In this document: piece by piece, positions 4,146 to 35,885 of the stretch
Layout of the letters: every line of letters starts with the position of its first letter
Numbering within the stretch: the first letter of the stretch is position 1
Origin: Entomortierella parvispora E1425
Taxonomy: Eukaryota > Fungi > Mortierellomycota
Reading direction: 5' to 3'
NCBI GenBank assembly: GCA_020891255.1
Contig: BQFW01000003.1
Coordinates: forward strand, 744,001 to 808,000
Length of the DNA: 64,000 bases
Position numbers and translations under genes: made by a program
Notes under the pieces: model-generated
What the model saw: the letters and a program-made list of their open reading frames with translations, nothing else
Told to the model about the DNA's origin: nothing
Database searches by the model: none

Positions 4146-6308
4146 TTAAAAGAACCTTGGACCCCAAGTCGAGGATGGCGGTGTCTCTTCAGGATTGCAG
4201 GTCGTACCCATACACCAAGCACTGTCTTTGACCCTGCCAATGCGCCAGCGTTCTTCTGGCTTTGACCGAAACATGTTTTGCAGCAACTCCTTGGCCTCTG
4301 GACTGCACTGTGGAGGCTCCTCATACCGTCCATTCAGGATCTGGAACTGCAGTCGGGGCTCATATTCGTCTTGGAAGGGCAGTCGTCCGGTCAAAAGTGC
4401 ATACAGAACCACCCCCAAGGACCACACATCCGAGGAGGGGCATCGCAGGGGCTTGGAAGACCGCAACTGCTCGGGTGAACAATAGGCGAGTGATCCCCCC
4501 ACAGTGTCTTCCTCCAAGGGGGAGTCTTCCTCCAATGGGCCACCTCCGCCACACGAGGCCGCCACCAGACCACCACCGCCACAAGCCGGTGTGGTGGGTG
4601 AATACAATGTGTCCCCAAACTGAGCCGCCACCTCTGCATCCTGGTACTCGGCCAGCCCAAAATCACAAATCTTCCAAGAGCCGTCGTCATGCAACAGGAT
4701 ATTTTCGAGCTTAATATCCCTGTGAACAATTTTGAGCACCTCATGAAGGTACCGCAATGCCTCCGCGACCTGGTTGAAGATCACCCGGGCTTCGCCTTCA
4801 TCCAGACCTTTGGTCGCCACATCACCAGCAGTCGGAATCGTGGATCGTTGGTTCGTAATGTAGTCCAAGAGGCGGCCTCCGCTGCAAAGCTCGCAAAAGA
4901 TAAACGTGCATGCTTCCAGCTTTTCAACCTGCACTAGCGACAATGCATTGGGGTGAGCAATTCGAGACCAAATCGCAATCTCCTTATTCAACATCCTCTG
5001 CACTCGCTCGTTGTTCGCCGCTCCTGTCTGGGTTTTGACAATCTTGACCGCCAGTTTGCTTGGTTGAGTGTCTGGGTCCATTCGAAAAGCTTCACGCACA
5101 ACAGAGAATCCTCCATGGCCAATGACCTTTCCCATAATAAAACCCCCCACCTGTGCTCCTTCTTCGTCCGGTTGAACCGTCGGTGCAGTCACGTCGACAA
5201 AGTTGGACAGAAAGGCAACGGCAGGAGAGTAAGGAAGCGAACTATAGGAGGATGAGGTGACCATTAGAATCTGGCTTTTTTGACTCCCCCCTGAAGAACC
5301 TTGGGTATGTTGTGAGGACCGCGATCCTGGATAGTTCAAAGAAGATATAGACTGTGCGCGATGGTTACGGTTAATAGGGACGCCGGGGGTGGTCGAGTAG
5401 CCCTCCCGGTCTCTCCAAGTGAAGGAAGGCGAGGCAGCAATGCTATATCGCCTCGTGTTGTCTGTTGGCATGGGGGGCGAAGGAACCGGTGCTGAGGTCT
5501 GATTGTCCCGGGGTGTGCTTGATACTGTGGAGACATTTGCAGCAGACGGCTTTGACTGAGAAGATTGTGGGGTTGCAGTATTTGAAGATGGGTCTTTCTT
5601 TTGACCATCCTTGGTTGATCCGCCTTTTTTCTGCCTATCTCTGTCCAGTGCTAGCGACAACTGACTGGCACTTCCTGCACTTCCTGGTTGCCATGAGGAC
5701 GACTGGACTGAAGGTGTCCAAGACCGTGTCAAGGGGGCCGATGGCCACCCTTCCTTCACAACTGGGACCCGGTCTGCACTCGGCCCCGAGCTTTTCAACT
5801 GAAGAGAGAGCGCAGATGTCTGCTGACTAGGTGCTGGTGCAGGACTGAAACGCTTTTGAAGACTGAGTGGCGATGTATCGATAGAGATCTTTGGCCGATG
5901 GTGAGGTCGTCCACTGGGAGACGCAGAGCCTGGATCTGGTGATCCTGGAGAGATAAACTGGCTGCTGTCTACGCTACGTCCTAGAAGGGACGTGTCAAAT
6001 CCTCTTTCAAGATGCGGCTCCTTCTTCCTTTGCTTTCTCTGATCGGCTGCCGAGTCTGCTGGGTTTGTCTTTAGAGCATCAAGACGTTTGATCAAGCTTG
6101 GACTAACGATGCCGTTGCGGGAGTGGCCCTCTGGCGGTCCTTTTGGATAGACATCTTTGTCATCTGGGTCGCCCATACCGGGACCAGAGAGCTCGATCTC
6201 CGAGGCCAACGAAGTCTGGGTCTTATGGTGAGAATGAGAAGGACTGGAAGAGGAAGAGGATGGCGGCGGGGAAGGAGGGAGTGGCTGTGCGGCGATCGTC
6301 ATTCCCAC
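4146..6308 (-). CDS. Ser/Thr protein kinase, CAMK group (Nnk1/SNF1-like), long S/P-rich N-terminus
   Basis: Single 720 aa ORF with GKVIGHGGFSVV, AVKIVK, HRDIKLEN, DFG, GGSLAYCSPE and DVWSLGVVLY motifs. Confidence 0.95.
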   Translation of the reverse strand: MGMTIAAQPLPPSPPPSSSSSSPSHSHHKTQTSLASEIELSGPGMGDPDDKDVYPKGPPEGHSRNGIVSPSLIKRLDALKTNPADSAADQRKQRKKEPHLERGFDTSLLGRSVDSSQFISPGSPDPGSASPSGRPHHRPKISIDTSPLSLQKRFSPAPAPSQQTSALSLQLKSSGPSADRVPVVKEGWPSAPLTRSWTPSVQSSSWQPGSAGSASQLSLALDRDRQKKGGSTKDGQKKDPSSNTATPQSSQSKPSAANVSTVSSTPRDNQTSAPVPSPPMPTDNTRRYSIAASPSFTWRDREGYSTTPGVPINRNHRAQSISSLNYPGSRSSQHTQGSSGGSQKSQILMVTSSSYSSLPYSPAVAFLSNFVDVTAPTVQPDEEGAQVGGFIMGKVIGHGGFSVVREAFRMDPDTQPSKLAVKIVKTQTGAANNERVQRMLNKEIAIWSRIAHPNALSLVQVEKLEACTFIFCELCSGGRLLDYITNQRSTIPTAGDVATKGLDEGEARVIFNQVAEALRYLHEVLKIVHRDIKLENILLHDDGSWKICDFGLAEYQDAEVAAQFGDTLYSPTTPACGGGGLVAASCGGGGPLEEDSPLEEDTVGGSLAYCSPEQLRSSKPLRCPSSDVWSLGVVLYALLTGRLPFQDEYEPRLQFQILNGRYEEPPQCSPEAKELLQNMFRSKPEERWRIGRVKDSAWCMGTTCNPEETPPSSTWGPRFF

Positions 6309-15019: not shown

Positions 15020-15503
15020 TGGTCGAACCCTGCGCTTTCGCTCAACTGGGAACAATCGCACTGTCCCTCTCTGCACGGTCAGGATTGACAAAGTGCCTGA
15101 AGATGACGCAAGGGATGCTCTGGGTTCCGCGGGATGACTCTTGTCATTTCATTCTTCCCCTTTTGCTGTGGTCGTAGATTGGGGTTGTTGTGCCTCTGAC
15201 CTCTGGCTCTGGATGTTCTCAGCCCGAGCCCCGGCTGGTTCAACTCTAGCGCTCACATCCTCTTTGGCACGGCAGCATAGCCGTAATTATCCAGAGCTGG
15301 GCAGCGCACTAGATGAAATTAGCCTGTCTTTGCCATCCTGCAGTGCTAGGCTTGGCTCTCTGACCTCCGCTTGCATTACCCGCCCTTGCCTGGAATCCAT
15401 CCACTGCATTCCTTTCCTTCATTCCCCTTCTCTCCCTCTCTCCCCTCCTCCCCCCCTACATTCCGCCAGTCATTAGCATCTCCACTCTCTCATTCTTTCC
15501 ATC

Positions 15504-18330
15504 ATGACCCTGGCCACACTCGATCCTTTCGGTAACTTTTTGCCCACCCTTTTGTTACAAAGTTACACCATGGCCAAAAACACACCAGAACTTGAACGTT
15601 GACCAATGTTGCATTTGGGATGGCATCCCTTTCTTCCATTAGCTACCGGCGTCAATGACCAAACTTCGACTTCTTCAGCATCTCTTCGTTTCTTGCTACT
15701 GGGAGATGTTGGCGTGGGTAGACGCGCCTTTGTCGACACATTCATTGCCTCCCTCGAAGGCGTGAACTCAAACACAGTCCTTCAGGAAAATATCCCTCGA
15801 CCCAACATTCAGTCTTCAACCTCTCTTTCTCCCTCGGCAATCTCTTTGCCCGCCGTCCATGTCCAGACATCTCCTGTCTTTGGCCCAGGAAAGAAGGGCG
15901 CTTCGTCGCCTTTTGATGACCCTCTTGGACTAGTTCCACCAAACGTGCAAACCCCTGGACGAGATCTGTGGTTTGTCACGTTGCCTGGGTACTCTTCAAC
16001 CACCAATCCATCCTCGGTCCTCTCGATGACCGATGACTATCTCAACCACCACCTCCTGACGACCACCTCCATCTTTTCGCCTACTATCCCATCCGCTCAA
16101 CTGGCCTGGTTTCTCATGACTGGAGGTCGTGCTCACACCTTGCCCACATGCGCTTTCTATTTTGTACTCTATGAGCTCAAGCCGGTGGACATCCTTTATA
16201 TGAAACTGGTGCATGAACGCGTCAACTTGGTCCCGATCATCACCAAAGCCGACACTGTCTCGTCCAGAGAACTCTGGATCCTCAAACGGAGAATGATTCG
16301 ACAGCTCAAGCTCAACGGTATCAAGTTTCATACGTTTGGCATGGATTTGGAGACGGTCGAGGCCATGACAGATCGTCATGAATGGGGTGCCCCTCCATTC
16401 GCAGTGAGCTCTCGCAGGGATCAAAACGGACAACTGCCACAAAGTGAGTTGGGCCAGTTGATCAAATTGTGCCTTTATGAACAGCTCAGACACAGCCAGG
16501 AGGAAGCAGCGCGCAAGGTCATCGAATGGAGGTGAGAGCGAGTATATTTTTTAGTTTGTGACGATGCTTCCAGAACAACTGGATCCCGATACAACCGTTC
16601 ATTGTACAAAATGGATTGCAATCCTCTCCCTAACACATGGAATTCGCTTTGTGAGCTGTAGAAGAGCGTTCGGTCCGTCTGGATACCCGGCGACCACCGT
16701 AGCTGAAAAGGTTTGGGGAGAGCGTGCGGCAGATGACGGCACAAGCTCATCTGATCGACGACCAGCACTGGCCACAGATACGCGACCGACTGAACTGACA
16801 ACGTCCGGTAGTTCTTTTTACAACAATCCGGAATTTGAAGCGCAACTCATCAGCCAATACGTTTTACGCCAGGAAGATGTCGCCAGCCCGCCTTCGGCAC
16901 AGGCAGGGACGTTGGGATTTGAGTCGCCGACTGGAGAGACGTCCCCTGTGAAGGACATGTCGACTAAGCCCTACGGCGTGTCGATGTATACCTCACCCAA
17001 TTTAACAGCGGCTGAGGCACGGTTGTCTCTGATCCATCAGACGACAGGAATGAGTGTGGACAGCTCCACTCGACCGAATGAGATCATGGACGACAAGGTG
17101 AACACTGTTCATACACTTTCCGATGGCCAATATGCCGCCTCTGGCGCAGCCATCGAAGGGTAAGGGCTCATTCTTGAATTACAATAGTGGAATCAAGGAA
17201 GCAGATGACGAGCAGTTTCAAGGTGCTCAACAAACTGAATCGACCCTAATCGCTCACACACCTTTCTTTTTGTATTTCGATTATAGCACGGAGTTCAAAG
17301 TAGAAGTTCCGAACTCGGGAACCTATCAACAAATGCAGTACCACCAGCCCTTGCCACAGCAGGAGCCATCGTATCTAGTGCAGGGAGGATACCCGACCAC
17401 GGCTGGTGCCTATATTGTGCCAGACATGTACCAACCAGGATTAGCATTTTCTTTGTCACCAGGAGAGGCGCTGGGTGACATTTGGGAAGCAACAGAATTG
17501 GGTGACATTGCGACCGTTCAACGGCACCTGAACAATGGCGCGTCACCGGATCAACGCAACGCGTCTCGATCGACCCTTTTGCACCGCGCTGCATGGCAGG
17601 GATCCCGACCCTACGGGATGATGAACCTCTTGATCTCTTATGGAGCCAACGTAAATTTGGCCAACGAAAACGGTAATACCGTTCTGCAAAACGTGCTGAT
17701 GAAGCACGATGATCCGGCTTTGATCAAGTTGTTGCTCGACAATGGAGCAGAGACCAACATTCCCAACAAGGAAGGAATGAATACTTTGGAGGTCGCGGCA
17801 TTGTTCAACAAGTTGGATTCTGCAAAGTACTTGCTGGATCATGATCTGGAGTCCTCGGAGCCACAGAGTATCACGAATGCATTGACTCGGGCACGCAGTC
17901 CCGACAAGAAGCTGATGAAAATGTTGCTCAAGAGTTGGCAGGGCAAGGAAGGAGAAAAGAAACGAAGCGACCTTGTGGAGAGACTGCTGAGTCCTCCGAA
18001 TAGCAGCCCCAATCCAGTTCCGGTACAGGGACAGCAGGCACCAACAACACATCCTGTCATGCACAACCGTAGTTTGAGTCAATTGCAGAACCAAAGCCAG
18101 AGTCAAATTGCGGACGCCACCAGTATCCACAGCACGGATACGCAGAAGGGAGGCGATGGAAAGTATGTTTTTGTGAAGTGGGCTCGGCAGATAAAATGAC
18201 AGGATGTATGGATATAAGACCTGAAGTCGGACAAGTTGTCTAAACCAAAACACAATGGTCAACCCTTTTCTATAACCATAGCGCCAACTCGAGCAAGGCC
18301 AGCTCCATCCACTATGAAGGTAGGTGTTCG

Positions 18331-18363
<33 letters not shown>

Positions 18364-18581
18364 GGCTCGTGATCTGTCATGGCGTTGTATTCTTATTTTG
18401 GTGGCAAACATCCCCTGACCAATTTTTTGTTGTTTGGGACACAGAAAATGGAACGACGATCTCCTCCAACTCATCGACTGCCCAGTCAAGCAGTCAGTCC
18501 AAGCATACGAGCCGATTCAACCTCAAGACCATGCGAGCAGCAGCACCCTCGATGAGCAACCTGTTTAGCCGTAAACCGTAA
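15504..18581 (+). CDS. Septin-like GTPase domain fused to ankyrin repeats (~821 aa)
   Basis: Exons 15504-15531, 15643-16531, 16662-17159, 17287-18162, 18282-18319 and 18445-18581 total 2466 nt in frame, all GT-AG. Septin landmarks: LRFLLLG..G, LPGY, CAFYFV..LKPVDILYMKLVHERVNLVPIITKADT..EL..LKRRM and PFAV. About 4 ANK repeats at ~17480-17840. Confidence 0.85.
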
Positions 18582-18739
18582 TGATATTTTATGACAACCC
18601 GACATTGTTTTTTAGCATCGTCCTACGAAAAAAAAAACCCCCCCTTGCTCCTTTTACACGCATTCCCGTCATCCGCCTTGGTCCTCGTCCTCGTTCTCGT
18701 TTCTCCAATTCCTTCTTGTCTTGTTGGACAGATCAGACT

Positions 18740-19085
18740 TTACGGAATGCTAACGTAGCGAAGACGACGGCGCTCTCGGTCATTGACGAGGCTATGGTTA
18801 TAAAAAAGAGTCAGTAGAGTAGATGAGTAGATGTTAAAATAAGACAATGCATGATGACATGACAAACAAAGAGCTCTTCCTTTTGTCCACCCGAGACACG
18901 TACAAGTAGATGATAAGTCCAATAATAGGACATAAAAAGATGAGAAGGCTCCAAAGAATCTTTGACGAGAAGGGCTTGTTGGATTGAAGGACTTGGATGA
19001 CAGCGTAGAGATCGAGGACAAAAATCAGGACGCTGAGCACTGAGCCAGAGTAATAGAGGCCAGGGTCGATGGGAGAAGAAATCAT
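18740..19085 (-). CDS. Small membrane protein, stand-alone PLDc_N (cardiolipin synthase N-terminal) domain, 77 aa
   Basis: Exons 19085-18904 and 18791-18740 (intron GTACGT..CATAG) give MISSPIDPGLYYSGSVLSVLIFVLDLYAVIQVLQSNKPFSSKILWSLLIFLCPIIGLIIYFLVNDRERRRLRYVSIP. The D..A...v..S....K.lW...I...P.iG.i.Y pattern matches PLDc_N. Confidence 0.8.
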
Positions 19086-19140
19086 TGCGTGTGAATAGGT
19101 CAGAGATATGTATTGGCCAGAAAATGTATGTATGGGGGAC

Positions 19141-19192
19141 AGAGAAAGAGAGAGAGAGAGAGTGTGTGTGTGTGTGTGTGCGTGTGTGTGTT
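19141..19192. repeat. Compound (GA)n(GT)n microsatellite
   Basis: Read directly. Confidence 0.9.
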
Positions 19193-20080
19193 TGTGTGGT
19201 GGGGAAAGAGAGAGAGGGGAAAAGAGAACGAGAGAGAAGTGTGAGAAGAAGGGCAGGGAGAGACGACGCCAAGGAAAGCCAAGCCAATGGTCCACCCCCG
19301 CCTCTGTGCGCGATCTCCACGTGATTCAACGCAAGGCGCAGACGCGACACGACACGCATGGGAGGGGGGTTAGTCAAACCCCACACACTGCTGCGAAGGT
19401 ACACTGACCATCGCACACGACAAGTGGCACGCAGATGGGCACGGTTTGGGTGAAGGAAGTACTTTGTGGTGCGAGCTGGGAACTAGACTGGAGTTCAACA
19501 TAAAGAGGGGTTAAAGAGGCGTTGGTGCAAGCACGTTTGTAGCGTAACTGTACTGTACAGTACTTTTTGATGTCCATACGTGCAAATGAGAAGGAGGTGA
19601 AAAGGAGAGAAGAAAAAAGCAGGACCAGGAGATCACGTCCGGAGGAAGAACAGCGCCGAGGAGGGGTCCAGCGATAGGCAGACAGGCAGAGTGGGGAGTG
19701 AGTGGGAGGTGGGGCCAAGAAGCAAGACAAGGTGGGGTCCGAAGGCAGGGAAGGAGGGGAGCGGATGGACGAGCACGACCCGCCGAGGGAGGCACGGACA
19801 CTGTCGGATGGATCGCAGTGCTGTCGCACCCAACATAGCGAGCAAGGATTACAAGTAAGAGAGAGAACAGAAGAAAGAAAGAAAGAAAGAAACAGGAAAC
19901 GGTCACAAAACCCAAAAAGAGCGGAACTCAGCTCCCTTCTCTGACTCTGACTCGATCCCTTTCTGAGTGTGCCCATGCCGCCACTCTCTGCTGGGAGTGG
20001 TACCAGTCAGTCAGTCGCCTCTCTGGTCCGCTTTGTCTCTTTCCTTCTTCACTCCCTGTCGTCTGCATCCCCACATCCCC

Positions 20081-20233: not shown

Positions 20234-23838
<3,605 letters not shown>

Positions 23839-29493: not shown

Positions 29494-32400
29494 TCAATCG
29501 TCCTCGTCATCAAAGATATTCACTAGTGGACTAGACTGCCGTTGGGAATGACTGCCTCCAGTACTTCTAGACGGCTGACCTGATGCTGAGGGTCCAAATG
29601 CTCTACCACTTGGTCGATTTGAAGTCGATGACGGCCGATTTGTGCCTGGAGCGCCTGGTTGTGACACACGTGTTTGAGGCTGAGGACTATGTCCTCGAGA
29701 ATGAGATCCACTGCGACTACTGGGTATCCTGGACTCTCCAACCGAGAGCAAACGATCCCGGTCAGCATCTCCGTGGGAAGAACGAGGCTGCTGCTGAACA
29801 GACGCAAACATCAAGGCGGGTCCACTTCGGGCTGCTGACGCAAACCGATCCGGCCGATAACCTTGTCCTCCTGCGGTCAGTGAAGGGGGATGCGAGTCAT
29901 GTCCGGTGCTTTCTGTACTTGAGCGTGCGCCGTCATTGTCGATCAGATTGGGTGTATCGGCCCCCTCTAACGCAATGGCTTGCTTGGGCTTTATGATTTT
30001 TTGCCAAATCGATTTCAGAGGCCCAGGCTCTGAAGAGCTTGGTGGATCGAGCGCAGCAATATTCCTCTGAGAGTTCCTTGTGGATGAGTTTCCAAGGCGA
30101 CTAGGCGTCTCAAAGGATCCACGAACGCCTCCTACATTTGCTCCCCCGGTACCAAAGTGATCCATGGAATCCCGTCGACCAAATCCAGCAAATACACTGC
30201 TACTATCATCGTCATCTGTCGAATCGTCAAAATATGCATCGCCGTAGGGCCGCTGGCTAGAGCCACTTGGATGAGGACGCACATCACGCCATGCATTTGC
30301 ACTAGAACCATCGCCTAAAACTCCGTGGGATGGCCCGTGTGCGTCACCTCGTCTCCTGCTCTTATTGGTATTATATGTCTAGGTAAATTCAGAAGATAAC
30401 ATTAGTAAGTGGGAAAATGGGGCCGTCAAAGTTGAACCACTGTGCGAGCATAAAGCTCCAAGAGACACTCACCTCAAAAGCGGCCCCGCGTCTGGCTGTG
30501 AAATCACGGTTCACGCCGGACCGATCTGGCATCAACCGCCTCTCTTCATCTCTACGAGCTATTTTGCACAATGTGAATAAACTATTAGTAAACAGAAAAA
30601 CCATATATCCACTGATGAGCTGCATCATGGTTGGCAACATACCGTCTTTCAGAACTTGCTGACCTTCCTCCAAGTCTCCGCCAATACCACCTTCATCGTC
30701 GTCATTGTCGAAAAAGTTGTCCGAGATGCTGCAAATAGCAAACATCTTTGCAAAGACGTTGAATAGGGTGATGAGGGTAGGGACAAGAATAACATAGGGC
30801 ATGTAGTAATTGAATTCACCCAAGAACGGCACCATGTCGATCTTTCCCATGTACTATACGGTTTCAAAGATTCAAGAAGGGTGGGTTAGAATCTAGAAGC
30901 TGGAACGGTACACCAAGGATCATATCGTGTAGTCGTACCTGAGCAAATATGGTGCTGTCTTCCTTGCCAATAGTGGAGATGGTCAAATAGTTGTAGACCA
31001 AAGGGAACCTACGACCAAAGGGTAAAGAGTTAGCCAAAGCACATAGCTGGATTTTCTTGCATCACCGTCTTGTTGATACTCACGTGAGTCGGCAAAGGTA
31101 CGATCCGATAAACAGTAATGTTGGTTCATCCGTGTGGTGGTTCGGTACAAGAACATAGTTGTTCAGTAGCTTCATCTTCATCAATGTCGTGTAAGCGCAT
31201 GTACACATGTAACACATCGTAAGGAAACTGATGGCCTCGATCGAACCATAGGATACGTTTTGCCTGGCTATTTGGACCAGCAGTCCAATGACACTAAGAA
31301 TTGGATTGACGTTTTGGTATGTCATCTCGGACCAGACGATCAAAAGGGAAAGTGCTGCACAAATCACCGATGCAGATTTCAACAAGACTGGGCGAATATT
31401 CAAGTGCCAGTGCCACTCCAATGATAACCTCCAGTCTTTTGGTTTTGAGCCCAAAGGTCGCAGCGTGGATCGAAATTTCCTATGGGAACGAGATTGTTCA
31501 AAGGTGAGATGTTGTTCGGCACCCCCCTATTTTTTCAAAGGCAAAGTTTGGCAAAGGCGATAAGGTGCTTCGGGGCTTACTTCTCGGGATTATCCGCATT
31601 TTCCTGAATATCCTGTGCCAAGAATCCCGCTTTGAGCAGATCGTGCCAAATGCTATGTGTGCAACAAACAAAGCGTGTCAGCCAGCTGGACAAAAGCCAC
31701 TCGTCCTCCGCTTTGACAACCCAAGCCGAGACGAGATCGCCACTTCCGACACGAGATTGACCACAAAAACAATATATAAAAATTCCCCCACTTACGCCGT
31801 CCATCTGTCCTTCATCCGCAGTGCCCTCTTGATTCGAGCATGTAGATCTGCCAAATATTTCTCTGTGATGATTGCTGGAACCAAGCCATCCATTGAGTGT
31901 TTGCGAGCAGCAATACCACCGACAAGTGCCGGCCGTGTGGGTGGTCCAGAGGTGGCTCCGCCTGTGTTTGCTCCTCCTGCGGCGTCATTTCTAGGAATTG
32001 GAGATGATGTCCTGCTAGACTCAAACTGTACGCCTCGGACTGCCGGGAAATCCGCTACCATTCTGTCGACATGGACTCGCAGCGGATCGGAAAGCTGAAG
32101 CTTGTGGCAAACCACAGAAAGTTCCTATCACAAGCACGAGAGGAATGAGTCGTTGGTACACCTCTGTATTTTTTTTTGGGGGCAATAGGGGGTTGATAGT
32201 GTCTCTGCAAGAAAGCATGCATATCACTGGTCCTGCATATCTGTCCATCTATCCCTACCTTTGCCACACTCAGCACTTCATCCTCTGTATCCTGACGCTT
32301 GTCCTTGACAACACTTGCTTTAAAACTGATCCTTCGAAGCTCTCTGGCATTGTCGCCCTGGTGCCAGAGTCTTCTGGGCACATCGACCATTCCATAGCCC

Positions 32401-33208
32401 ATGAAAATGACAACAAGGATCAGCCCCCAGCTGTTACTCAAGGCCATGATATAAGCGCGCAGATTGCTTGTTCCCTGCGCATACCAGACATACACGAGAC
32501 CCAGCAAAGCGATGGATCCCACGACGAGCTGGTATAGAATGTTGTAACGAACGGCGCTCCTGATCCTCTTCATCACTGTGAACTCGCCCGATTGAGTGTA
32601 GGCTTGCAGCAGCGGGATCAAGGCCCTGCAGAGGTGCACATGAGAAGAAGAGAACGGGAGAGAAAAGAGAGAGAAAGAGGAGGATGTCAAGTTAGAGACT
32701 TGCCCTGAAGCGGCGCCATGGTTTTTCTTTTTTTTTTTTTTTTTTTTTTCTGCATGGGCCATGGGCCAGCACACTGTTCTTTACCATGTAAGTGCAAAAC
32801 TGCACCAGTAGATTGTCCTCCATGCAGCGACGAGGAACTCGCTCGAGACGTACATGAGCGGCGGATTGCATAGAACTTCTTTGCATCCTTGAAAGAGAGT
32901 CTAGTCAGTCGGTCAAGTCAGTTGTTGTGGGGTCAGTCGGTCAGTCAGTTGGCGGCAACCCCATAGGAATGTTGATGCATGCATGCATGCAAAAAGTAAC
33001 GCTGCAAAGACCGGTCCATGAATGAATGAATTACCGAAGAGAGGTCCAGAGGCACCAAAACCACGATGGAGAAGGGGAAGAACCATGAGACGTAGGCGAT
33101 GAGGCTCACGTACCAGGCGTGCTCGGCTCTGTTGCCAAAGTAGTTGAGCAGCCCTGCCACGAGGGCAATCAGGGTGATTGCACCGGCGACCAGCGAGAGG
33201 ACTGCCAT
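29494..33208 (-). CDS. LMBR1-family multi-pass membrane protein (LMBRD2-like)
   Basis: Motifs VSWFFPFSIVVLVPLDLSS, IPLLQAYTQSGEFT..RIRSAVRYN, SNSWGLILVVIFMGYGMVDVPRRLW, YLCRLTFPLVYNYL and MGKIDMVPFLGEFNYYMP, with an S/G-rich C-terminal tail. Many introns. Confidence 0.9.
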
Positions 33209-34155: not shown

Positions 34156-35885
34156 TCAAACACGAACCTCCTGCAACACATTCAACAGCTCAAAGTCGGT
34201 CGTGTCCTGGTTGATGGCCCAGAGCATCACGCCTCCAAGGTTCTTTTGTTTGGCAAAGTCGACCTTCAGTTTCAGTGACTCGCGATCGTCGTAGCTAATA
34301 AATTGCTTTGTCACTGGGTTGAACAACCACGGTGTCTGTGACTCCTCGTCAAACTTGCGCACCCAAGGAGCACGGGCATTACCATTGGCATCAATCACGC
34401 CTTGCTCTCTCAAGTTCTTGTACTTCCACACACCAGAGTAAGCTGCAGTCTTCTCACAAGGGTCCGTCCACAACCCATCGTTGTTGTCTCCGATCGGGAC
34501 CTTCTTGTCAAAGGGTGCCGCCATCGATTGAGCAGAGGTCATATCTCTCTTGGTGATCAACGACCGACCGTAGAAAGGAACGCCCATGTTGATCTGCTCT
34601 GGGGGGAAACCTGCATTGATCCATGCTTCTGCTCCTCCAACGTAGGTCAAGCCAGAACCTTCCAAGGGAGCGTTCGCGCCGGTGACCGTTCCCCAAGACC
34701 CATTGATGTCGTAGGCCATGACGTTGATGTGGTTGACAACCTTACTAAACTCGCTCACGTCCTTCATCGGGCCATCGGGTCCGTCAAAGGGAACAATTCG
34801 AGTGGCCAGTGAGATTTCAAGACCTTCTCCGTTTGGAAGATCGTTCATCGCGGCTCGGAGTTCGCGAAGAAGCTTCAAAAAGTTTTTGGAGTCGTTTTGT
34901 TCATCAAACTTGTTACAGGCGCTGCCCAGTCGGCCAGGATACTCCCTTCGAGCGTACAAAAGTGATCAATGAATACAAGTTAATAGGAGGCTCATGGCTG
35001 TCGATGCGTATACAATAAGAAGAACTAATAGATACACCACATACCAGTCAATGTCAATACCATTGAGATCATACTCCTTAATCATGTTAATTGCGCCATC
35101 GACAAAAGTCTTGCGACCTTGCTTAGATGCAGCAAGGGGACTGAAGTACTGTGATCCTGTCCATCCTCCAATGGACATCAAGACCTTGACGTTGTTGGCA
35201 TGCGCACCTTTGACAACTCGCTTCAACAAATAGTCTGTCTCAAACACGGGCCTGAAGTCGGGCGTAACAATCGAAAAGGCATAGTTGACATGCGTCACCT
35301 TATTGAAGGGAATGTCCTCTGGGGGCATCGTAGCCGAAGTCCAGTCTGTCCAATACGCCACCACCATCTTTTCCTTTCGTCCTGCAAATGGCATGACATT
35401 GTCCCTATTCTTCCTGCCATCCTGATCCTTCTTTTTCTTGTGGTCCACAATCTCCTCGACCTCGTCATGGTCAGGTTCGCGCTCCTTAGTGCCTGATGGG
35501 GGTGGGCTGTGCTGCTCCTCAGGGACAACAAATGGGGTTTGATTTTCTTTGATCTGGACATGATCATCCTTGGCTTTGTCTAGCGTCAGTGTGTGCGTTT
35601 TTTGTCAGAAGACAGCTGTGGAGCCAAGGACCTATTTGATCTATGATTTGACGTGAAGACTATACCTTCGTGGCCTCGGTAAGGAACATGGGGGATGGCA
35701 TCTGCAGCTTTGTCATGAGCATTATGATGATGGTGGTGGTTGTTCGTTTTCTCTCGAACGTGGACCTTGTTTGATCCATGGATCTTGGCATCGTGGTGGT
35801 GTTTTCCCTCTCGTTGATGGGCGTCCGTCAGGGCAATCAACGATAATCCCAAAGAGAGGATGCAAAGAGTAGTGGGGATCTTCAT
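34156..35885 (-). CDS. Secreted GH18 chitinase with His-rich N-terminal extension
   Basis: Signal peptide MKIPTTLCILSLGLSLIALTDA, then VVAYWTDW, THVNYAF, KVLMSIGGW, catalytic NGIDIDW|EYPG (spliced), INVMAYDING and GGVMLWAINQD. Two introns. Confidence 0.95.

Follow-up and report, generated by a model that had tools for sequence, protein, structure and literature searches.

Does the septin-like gene at positions 15504-18581 of a 64,000-nucleotide stretch of the soil fungus Entomortierella parvispora E1425 (contig BQFW01000003.1, positions 744,001 to 808,000 of the forward strand; hereafter the window) encode a filament-forming septin, or has a septin fold been put to another use? An earlier note, made from the sequence alone, had described a septin-like GTPase fold spliced to ankyrin (ANK) repeats. 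We found that window 15504-18581 (+) holds one E. parvispora gene, which has six exons and is expressed, and its septin-derived G domain belongs to a lineage spread across the fungi. On balance we read the product of this septin-ANK gene as a non-filamentous septin-derived scaffold, with nearly all of the doubt falling on the functional half of that reading, which we infer.

Gene structure and expression

Three forward-strand open reading frame (ORF) fragments lie in the locus: 15606-16535 (309 aa), 16558-17163 (201 aa) and 17123-18199 (358 aa). The earlier note had joined them with small terminal exons into one frame with five introns. The resulting model has six exons (Table 1), 2466 nt of coding sequence and 821 aa, with zero internal stops, and sequencing data bear it out. 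No RNA-labelled runs were listed over the locus; a search across any run kind yielded X1, the genome run, and X2, which comes from the same sample and holds 74% of the sampled words. Contigs of both were placed on window 15300-18800. A single 3008-nt X2 contig fell at 15488-18791 with zero mismatches to the window, in the pieces 15488-15530, 15642-16529, 16660-17158, 17286-18162, 18282-18317 and 18443-18791. The breaks between pieces are all five predicted GT..AG introns, allowing the stated ambiguity of 1-2 bases, and the two junctions that had been singled out for checking (16531/16662 and 17159/17287) are both crossed. Junctions 1-4 stand in the joints table, and the fifth (18319/18445) was taken from adjacent pieces of the same X2 record; the table omits it, as rows close to the poly-T repeat had been removed.

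The X1 DNA contig retains the introns. The kind of X2 was only guessed by the tool ('DNA?'); we identify its contig as cDNA because it is intron-less and starts with an Illumina adapter remnant. One cDNA contig runs through all six exons, and the septin-like and ankyrin parts are therefore carried on one spliced mRNA.

The model protein has zero differences from 'uncharacterized protein EMPS_02318' (P0166) over residues 1-776; UniRef lists this entry under the name 'Septin-type G domain-containing protein'. The sole departure of the NCBI model of EMPS_02318 is at the last intron: it ignores the donor at 18320 and continues into the poly-T tract. The true C-terminus of EMPS_02318 is ...SRFNLKTMRAAAPSMSNLFSRKP, and the 3' end of the public model is wrong. 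Exon 6 is right because the cDNA contig uses it and because its peptide is conserved in orthologues and in L003, a metagenome locus from a close relative. The public protein closes with a run of phenylalanines; the poly-T tract lies in intron 5 (window 18320-18444).

The G domain

The N-terminal part matched Pfam Septin (PF00735) at E 2.4e-14 and 53.7 bits, against a gathering score of 26.2, over profile positions 115-207 of 280 only. Sequence matches of this part in the PDB were septins throughout, at ~1e-10 over the G4 region. An AlphaFold2 (AF2) model of the G domain (residues 11-305, 60-row alignment) reached a mean predicted local distance difference test score (pLDDT) of 91.6 and a predicted template modelling score (pTM) of 0.90. 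Foldseek searches with that model returned septins for all of the best 50 PDB and best 30 Swiss-Prot matches (template modelling score 0.52-0.62 by query), with Shs1 as the top Swiss-Prot match, and the atlas neighbours of the domain were septin clusters throughout. Another P-loop family would have been a better home for the domain had it scored higher, and none competed in the Pfam, PDB sequence or PDB structure searches. The septin-like assignment thus stood.

The septin hallmarks are unevenly kept. G4 is intact, G1 is degenerate and G3 has lost its aspartate (Table 1). That last loss is family-wide, the whole ANK family having [TS][LVI]PG at G3; neither it nor the GDVGVGRR P-loop figured in the earlier note, which had listed the polybasic region, the GRxYPWG motif and the C-terminal coiled coil as missing. 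All three absences were confirmed from sequence, alignment and AF2 models. Ahead of G1 stand only ~25 residues (MTLATLDPFATGVNDQTSTSSAS) with zero basic residues, and AF2 shows no helix there, leaving neither a polybasic region nor an alpha-0. After the PFAVSS strand, a loop of ~15 residues leads to the last two helices in both alignment and AF2 model; because this loop is so short, the beta-meander that carries GRxYPWG is absent. The alpha-5', alpha-5 and alpha-6 helices of the septin unique element are kept, and the full-length AF2 model contains no coiled coil. The invariant histidine of the family's 'AHxLP' motif was considered as the trans-acting histidine of the septin G interface and rejected, as alignments place the canonical histidine at a Thr/Asp position.

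Linker, ankyrin module and tail

A full-length AF2 model (P0166 residues 1-776, 50-row family alignment; pTM 0.44) has two folded parts, residues 22-330 and 535-706. Between them the linker of ~200-225 aa is disordered, with pLDDT <50 for residues 331-530, and pLDDT is likewise <50 past residue 707, in the low-complexity tail; this agrees with the S/T/P-rich linker noted from the sequence. The linker has no Pfam match. Within it the family alignment picks out short conserved islands, EKVW, ARLSLIHQTTGMSVDSSTRPNEIMDD, NTVHT and FKVEVPNSG, and a weak helix at residues 422-434 of the full-length model lies on a conserved island.

About four ANK repeats had been counted from sequence, and Pfam (Ank_2 6.3e-21, Ank_4 2.4e-14, plus other ANK models) and AF2 agree. 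The AF2 model shows four helix pairs and a three-helix cap at pLDDT 81-98, and the top PDB sequence matches were ankyrin-1/2 and designed ankyrin repeat proteins (DARPins). This module is the best-conserved part of the protein, with a mean pairwise identity of 0.82 in the family. No close relative of the module was found outside septin-ANK proteins: identity falls from >=68% to <=42%, and the remainder are generic multi-ANK proteins.

Table 1 Features of the septin-ANK gene in the window (positions count from the first letter of the window; L003 is the metagenome locus).
Feature	Position	Strand	Evidence
5' untranslated region (UTR)	15488..15503	+	X2 contig begins at 15488 after adapter remnant
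Exon 1, 28 nt, ATG, MTLATLDPF	15504..15531	+	N-terminus colinear with Gryganskiella P0204 and L003
Intron 1, 111 nt, GT..AG	15532..15642	+	X2 joint 15530/15642, cut +1
Exon 2, most of the septin-like G domain	15643..16531	+	Pfam Septin, AF2 model, Foldseek septin matches
Degenerate P-loop G1, GDVGVGRR in place of GxxxxGK[S/T]	15702..15725	+	Direct sequence reading; same GRR in L003
G3 remnant TLPG, DxxG aspartate gone	15978..15989	+	Alignment against DTPG[FY]G of related clades
G4 motif TKAD, kept	16242..16253	+	PDB alignments and family comparison
Intron 2, 130 nt, GT..AG	16532..16661	+	X2 joint 16529/16660, cut +2
Exon 3, last G-domain helix (to ~16734), then disordered linker (EKVW, ARLSLIHQTTGMSVDSSTRPNEIMDD and NTVHT islands)	16662..17159	+	Alignment and AF2
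Intron 3, 127 nt, GT..AG	17160..17286	+	X2 joint 17158/17286, cut +1
Exon 4, linker end (FKVEVPNSG island), ANK module, start of low-complexity tail	17287..18162	+	Pfam, alignment, AF2
Four ankyrin repeats and three-helix C-terminal cap, residues 531-706	17462..17989	+	Pfam and AF2
Intron 4, 119 nt, GT..AG	18163..18281	+	X2 joint 18162/18282
Exon 5, 38 nt mini-exon	18282..18319	+	X2 contig piece 18282-18317
Intron 5, 125 nt, GT..AG, holds long poly-T tract	18320..18444	+	Adjacent X2 pieces 18317 and 18443; comparison with P0166
Exon 6, coding part, stop TAA 18579-18581	18445..18581	+	X2 contig
Conserved C-terminal peptide SRFNLKTMRAAAPSMSNLFSRKP	18510..18578	+	Kept in Podila, Gryganskiella, Mortierella sp. 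NVP41 and NVP85, and L003

The septin-ANK family in Mortierellaceae

With the G domain as query, an exhaustive HMMER search across 1.8 billion representatives returned 606 proteins at E <=0.001, and its top full-length matches, from Lobosporangium, Podila and Mortierella, had the Septin+ANK architecture. A word-indexed search with a Podila orthologue as query listed ~60 proteins of this architecture from at least 11 genera of Mortierellaceae, among them Podila, Mortierella, Linnemannia, Entomortierella, Dissophora, Gamsiella, Lobosporangium, Gryganskiella, Haplosporangium, Benniella and Modicella. The architecture is kept in every Mortierellaceae genus sampled, and the family alignment is colinear through every exon junction in all relatives compared. 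Many members carry the automatic names 'septin 2', 'Septin-14' or 'Septin-type G domain-containing protein'; the first two are misleading for these orthologues.

A 61-row family tree resolved two old paralogue clades of 24 and 37 rows, with most genera present in both. The window gene lies in the smaller clade (A), adjoining a Gryganskiella copy. The window and the Gryganskiella locus (L004) have a common gene order of septin-ANK, a PLDc_N-domain gene and a 6-phosphofructo-2-kinase (6PF2K)/fructose-2,6-bisphosphatase gene (7086-8138 on L004), and these same neighbours support orthology of the two septin-ANK copies. In Mortierella sp. AD094, the predicted protein P0187 (1458 aa) wrongly fuses septin-ANK to the 6PF2K/fructose-2,6-bisphosphatase. 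At two loci of the larger clade (B), in Lobosporangium and Linnemannia, a GAT-domain gene is next downstream. The C-terminal SRFNLK...SNLF peptide was not found downstream of clade B genes; in its place stands a mini-exon, SSKWLKLKF, conserved between Lobosporangium (L001 ~6060-6098) and Linnemannia (L002 ~6050-6085).

The metagenome locus L003 (an ENA contig of 4359 nt), from an organism closely related to E. parvispora, carries a complete orthologue with the same six-exon structure and an open frame. It shares ~88% identity with the window in exons and 65-84% in introns. Prokaryote-style gene calling had split this orthologue into separate 'Septin' and 'Ank' proteins, which shows how septin-ANK fusions get hidden within metagenome protein sets.

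P-loop variation and selection

Most of the family retains a standard P-loop, with GK[ST] in 45/49 scorable relatives. Among these the GRR form is limited to E. parvispora, and GRS occurs in one Gryganskiella copy and one Mortierella sp. NVP41 copy. On the 61-row tree, the K-to-R change must have occurred independently at least twice, each time in clade A. GRR is not a sequencing error, since the DNA and cDNA contigs match the window and L003 has the same GRR. Replacement of the P-loop lysine by arginine usually inactivates an NTPase.

We compared the window gene with L003 (dS ~0.5) by the Nei-Gojobori method. The ratio of nonsynonymous to synonymous substitution rates (dN/dS) was 0.07 for the G domain, 0.046 for the ANK module, 0.20 for the linker and 0.15 for the tail. 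In the G-domain tree described below, the terminal branch of the window gene is not lengthened (0.15 vs 0.17 for its sister). Such strong constraint on the G domain despite its degenerate P-loop argues against decay and fits a pseudoGTPase selected for structure. With its P-loop Lys-Ser turned to Arg-Arg under such selection, the E. parvispora copy is most likely a pseudoGTPase in which fold, not catalysis, matters. Most orthologues keep GK[ST] and [AT]KAD and so probably still bind guanine nucleotide, and the family-wide loss of the G3 aspartate has probably impaired hydrolysis.

Origin of the G domain

The nearest relatives of the G domain without ANK repeats are Mortierella paralogues, followed by proteins of Endogonales, Calcarisporiella, Mucorales, chytrids and Pezizomycotina. 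Among the 77 nearest such relatives, 36/77 carry an N-terminal SH3 domain and 4/77 carry DUF6780; the sole ANK-bearing protein in this set is a truncated family member. Pfam found neither DUF6780 nor SH3 in the window protein. The SH3 + septin-like proteins include P0025, P0027, P0030, P0035 and P0036, and those traced to an organism are from chytrids; no paper describing this architecture was found in the literature searched. A word-indexed search with an Orbilia septin-like domain gave, among the 120 matches listed, only its own Septin/DUF6780 clade.

We built a G-domain tree of 50 rows rooted on canonical septins (quick search; Shimodaira-Hasegawa-like approximate likelihood ratio test (SH-aLRT) support only). 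The ANK family was monophyletic (100) and sister to Mortierella paralogues lacking ANK (98). Together with chytrid, Mucorales and Pezizomycotina groups, these formed one clade (99); a branch of 2.05 changes per site lies between it and the sampled canonical septins. In the alignment, the short loop in place of the beta-meander is common to this septin-like clade. The G domain therefore descends from a pan-fungal 'septin-like' lineage apart from the core filament-forming septins sampled (animal or unnamed rows). In Pan et al. 2007, some proteins of F. graminearum and N. crassa with only half a septin domain were set aside as 'septin-like'; going by their description, we think that these Slk proteins are the Pezizomycotina branch of this clade.

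Neighbouring features of the window

The convergent gene at window 18790-19420 (-) encodes a small membrane protein that has a PLDc_N domain (2.3e-10). The unstranded X2 contig continues past the septin-ANK 3' UTR and takes in a spliced exon of the PLDc_N gene, and for that reason the two transcripts probably overlap at their 3' ends. Past 18791 the contig runs on in the neighbour's sequence, so that its end does not mark the 3' end of the septin-ANK transcript. A GT/CA dinucleotide microsatellite just past the PLDc_N gene (window ~19110-19260) appears as 'HTHTHT' and 'VCVCVC' runs in ORF translations. Downstream, the 6PF2K/fructose-2,6-bisphosphatase gene occupies window 20796-23757 (+) and has a His_Phos_1 match. 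Two ordinary neighbours lie further on: an ORF matching LMBR1-like membrane proteins (3e-34) at window 32055-32774 (-) and one matching family 18 glycosyl hydrolases, i.e., chitinases (2e-42), at window 34156-34959 (-).

Comparison with described septins and septin-like proteins

Full-text literature searches for septin-ANK proteins, Mortierella septins and DUF6780 turned up no papers, and the supplements of a 2024 septin phylogeny contain zero Mortierellaceae entries. The earlier note knew of no described septin-ankyrin class. For the searched literature this holds, and the architecture is new there and unstudied; for the databases it does not, as EMPS_02318 and ~60 relatives already have annotated gene models in public collections.

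Like canonical septins (Groups 1-4; e.g., human SEPT2/3/7/9, yeast Cdc3/10/11/12 and Shs1), the protein has a TRAFAC septin-type G fold, a G4 [AT]KAD, the hallmark 'CxxYF...LKPxD' strand and the alpha-5'/alpha-5/alpha-6 helices. Unlike them, it lacks alpha-0 and the polybasic region, the beta-meander with GRxYPWG, the coiled coil and the G3 aspartate, has a 55-residue insert after alpha-1, and is fused to ANK repeats. Canonical septins score 260-430 bits over most or all of the Pfam profile, against its ~54 bits over a third.

The fungal septin-like proteins (Slk GzeHyp7/NcrHyp7, Septin+DUF6780 and SH3+septin-like) are closer. They share the G-domain clade (99), in which we infer the place of Slk, and the short meander loop, but they keep DTPG[FY]G and GK[ST], and their partner is SH3, DUF6780 or none rather than ANK. 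Among published proteins the closest counterpart is Bhr1 of Dichomitus squalens (PMC13532241), in which a septin-like pseudo-NTPase, its G1 and G3 degenerate and its G4 intact, is fused to Zn(II)2Cys6. Compared by description, Bhr1 likewise joins a divergent septin-type domain to an unrelated effector module in one fungal lineage; the module of Bhr1 is a DNA-binding domain, and Bhr1 is confined to Agaricomycetes.

The fungal septins of Group 5 (AspE) are non-core, have no coiled coil and show poor conservation of interface residues (PMC6323724; PMC8801916). By description, the septin-ANK protein resembles this group in being non-core and lacking a coiled coil. Group 5 is reported to have a full-length septin domain and the meander-region residues R360/W364/H374 (PMC6323724), and in this same comparison the septin-ANK protein has neither. 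Septin pseudoGTPases, e.g., Shs1 and Cdc11-type subunits, are a known theme (PMC10731463). They too have naturally degenerate nucleotide-pocket residues on a preserved fold, but they remain parts of hetero-oligomers, whereas the septin-ANK protein is without the interface elements and carries ANK repeats.

Proposed function and alternatives

The alpha-0/polybasic region and the beta-meander build the NC and G interfaces of septins, and since both are missing, the septin-ANK protein most likely does not polymerise into septin filaments. A septin-derived scaffold or adaptor is the best reading of what it does instead, as the earlier note had suggested. The restriction to early-diverging fungi that the note proposed as a possibility needs redrawing in both directions: among the proteins searched here the ANK fusion occurs only in Mortierellaceae, and the G-domain clade is pan-fungal. 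On the proposed mechanism, the septin-derived domain would self-associate or act like a switch, and in this way position or regulate the ankyrin platform. This behaviour would be nucleotide-dependent in most orthologues and fixed in the E. parvispora copy. The ANK repeats are predicted to bind one conserved partner, and the linker islands and clade-specific C-terminal peptides could act as short docking motifs.

Several points weigh against this scaffold. The G domain may regulate the ANK platform, which is an argument from architecture only, and the full-length AF2 model gives no confident arrangement between the two (pTM 0.44). The canonical rows of the G-domain tree are animal or unnamed, with Group 5 (AspE) and fungal Groups 1-4 left out. 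Loss of the meander makes canonical G-interface pairing unlikely and leaves room for other contacts with core septins.

Such contacts are the basis of the best-surviving alternative, a filament-associated subunit that pairs with core septins by capping or side-binding and whose ANK repeats recruit cargo to septin structures. The clear septin fold would suit this role, as would the retained G4 and alpha-5/alpha-6 helices of the septin unique element. Against it, alpha-0 and the polybasic region, the beta-meander with its Sep3 motif and the G3 aspartate are all lost, the branch from the canonical septins sampled is very long, and the Pfam match covers ~1/3 of the septin profile. We regard it as unlikely.

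The order of an NTPase followed by ANK repeats also resembles fungal NOD-like receptor (NLR) architectures, and E. parvispora is rich in unusual NLRs (PMC12258605), so that the protein could be imagined as a sensor of the NLR or STAND (signal transduction ATPases with numerous domains) kind, its C-terminal repeats recognising non-self or a modified host target. This is very improbable: the NTPase is TRAFAC septin-type, not NACHT or NB-ARC, the gene is present in one to few copies per genome with stable synteny, and four ANK repeats only, at 82% identity and dN/dS 0.046, are the opposite of diversifying recognition repeats.

That the missing Lys-Ser of the P-loop (GDVGVGRR vs GK[ST] in most relatives) marks an incipient pseudogene is scarcely credible for a gene with an open frame that is expressed with five introns correctly spliced, whose GRR is kept in the L003 relative at dS ~0.5 under a G-domain dN/dS of 0.07, and whose terminal branch is not lengthened. 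The idea that prediction has merged two distinct genes, one septin-like and one ANK, can practically be dismissed: stops in the genomic frame do separate the three ORF fragments and prokaryote-style gene calling does split L003, but one cDNA contig joins both parts via in-frame GT..AG introns and the relatives are colinear across the junctions.

Implications

Septins have been studied almost only as filament-forming hetero-oligomers, and in this gene their G fold recurs as a module, stripped of the filament-building elements and tethered to a protein-binding ankyrin platform. The P-loop-dead copies occur naturally, are under purifying selection and stand beside P-loop-intact orthologues and paralogues, which offers a test of what nucleotide binding contributes. 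Conservation of the ANK module is high enough to expect one defined partner, identifiable by pull-downs.

The gene further draws attention to a wide fungal clade of septin-like fusion proteins passed over in septin classifications. As a tentative extension, which we hold to be possible rather than probable, these proteins could form a distinct, unnamed lineage of septin-derived non-filamentous adaptor GTPases without the beta-meander, whose G domain would be a dimerising or switch cassette set on varied binding modules. The SH3-fused proteins of chytrids, the DUF6780-linked proteins of Pezizomycotina and the ANK-fused proteins of Mortierellaceae would be examples of it, and perhaps the Zn2Cys6-fused Bhr1 type too. 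If so, the K-to-R P-loop variants of Mortierellaceae would offer, ready made, GTP-dependent and GTP-independent versions of one scaffold for comparison.

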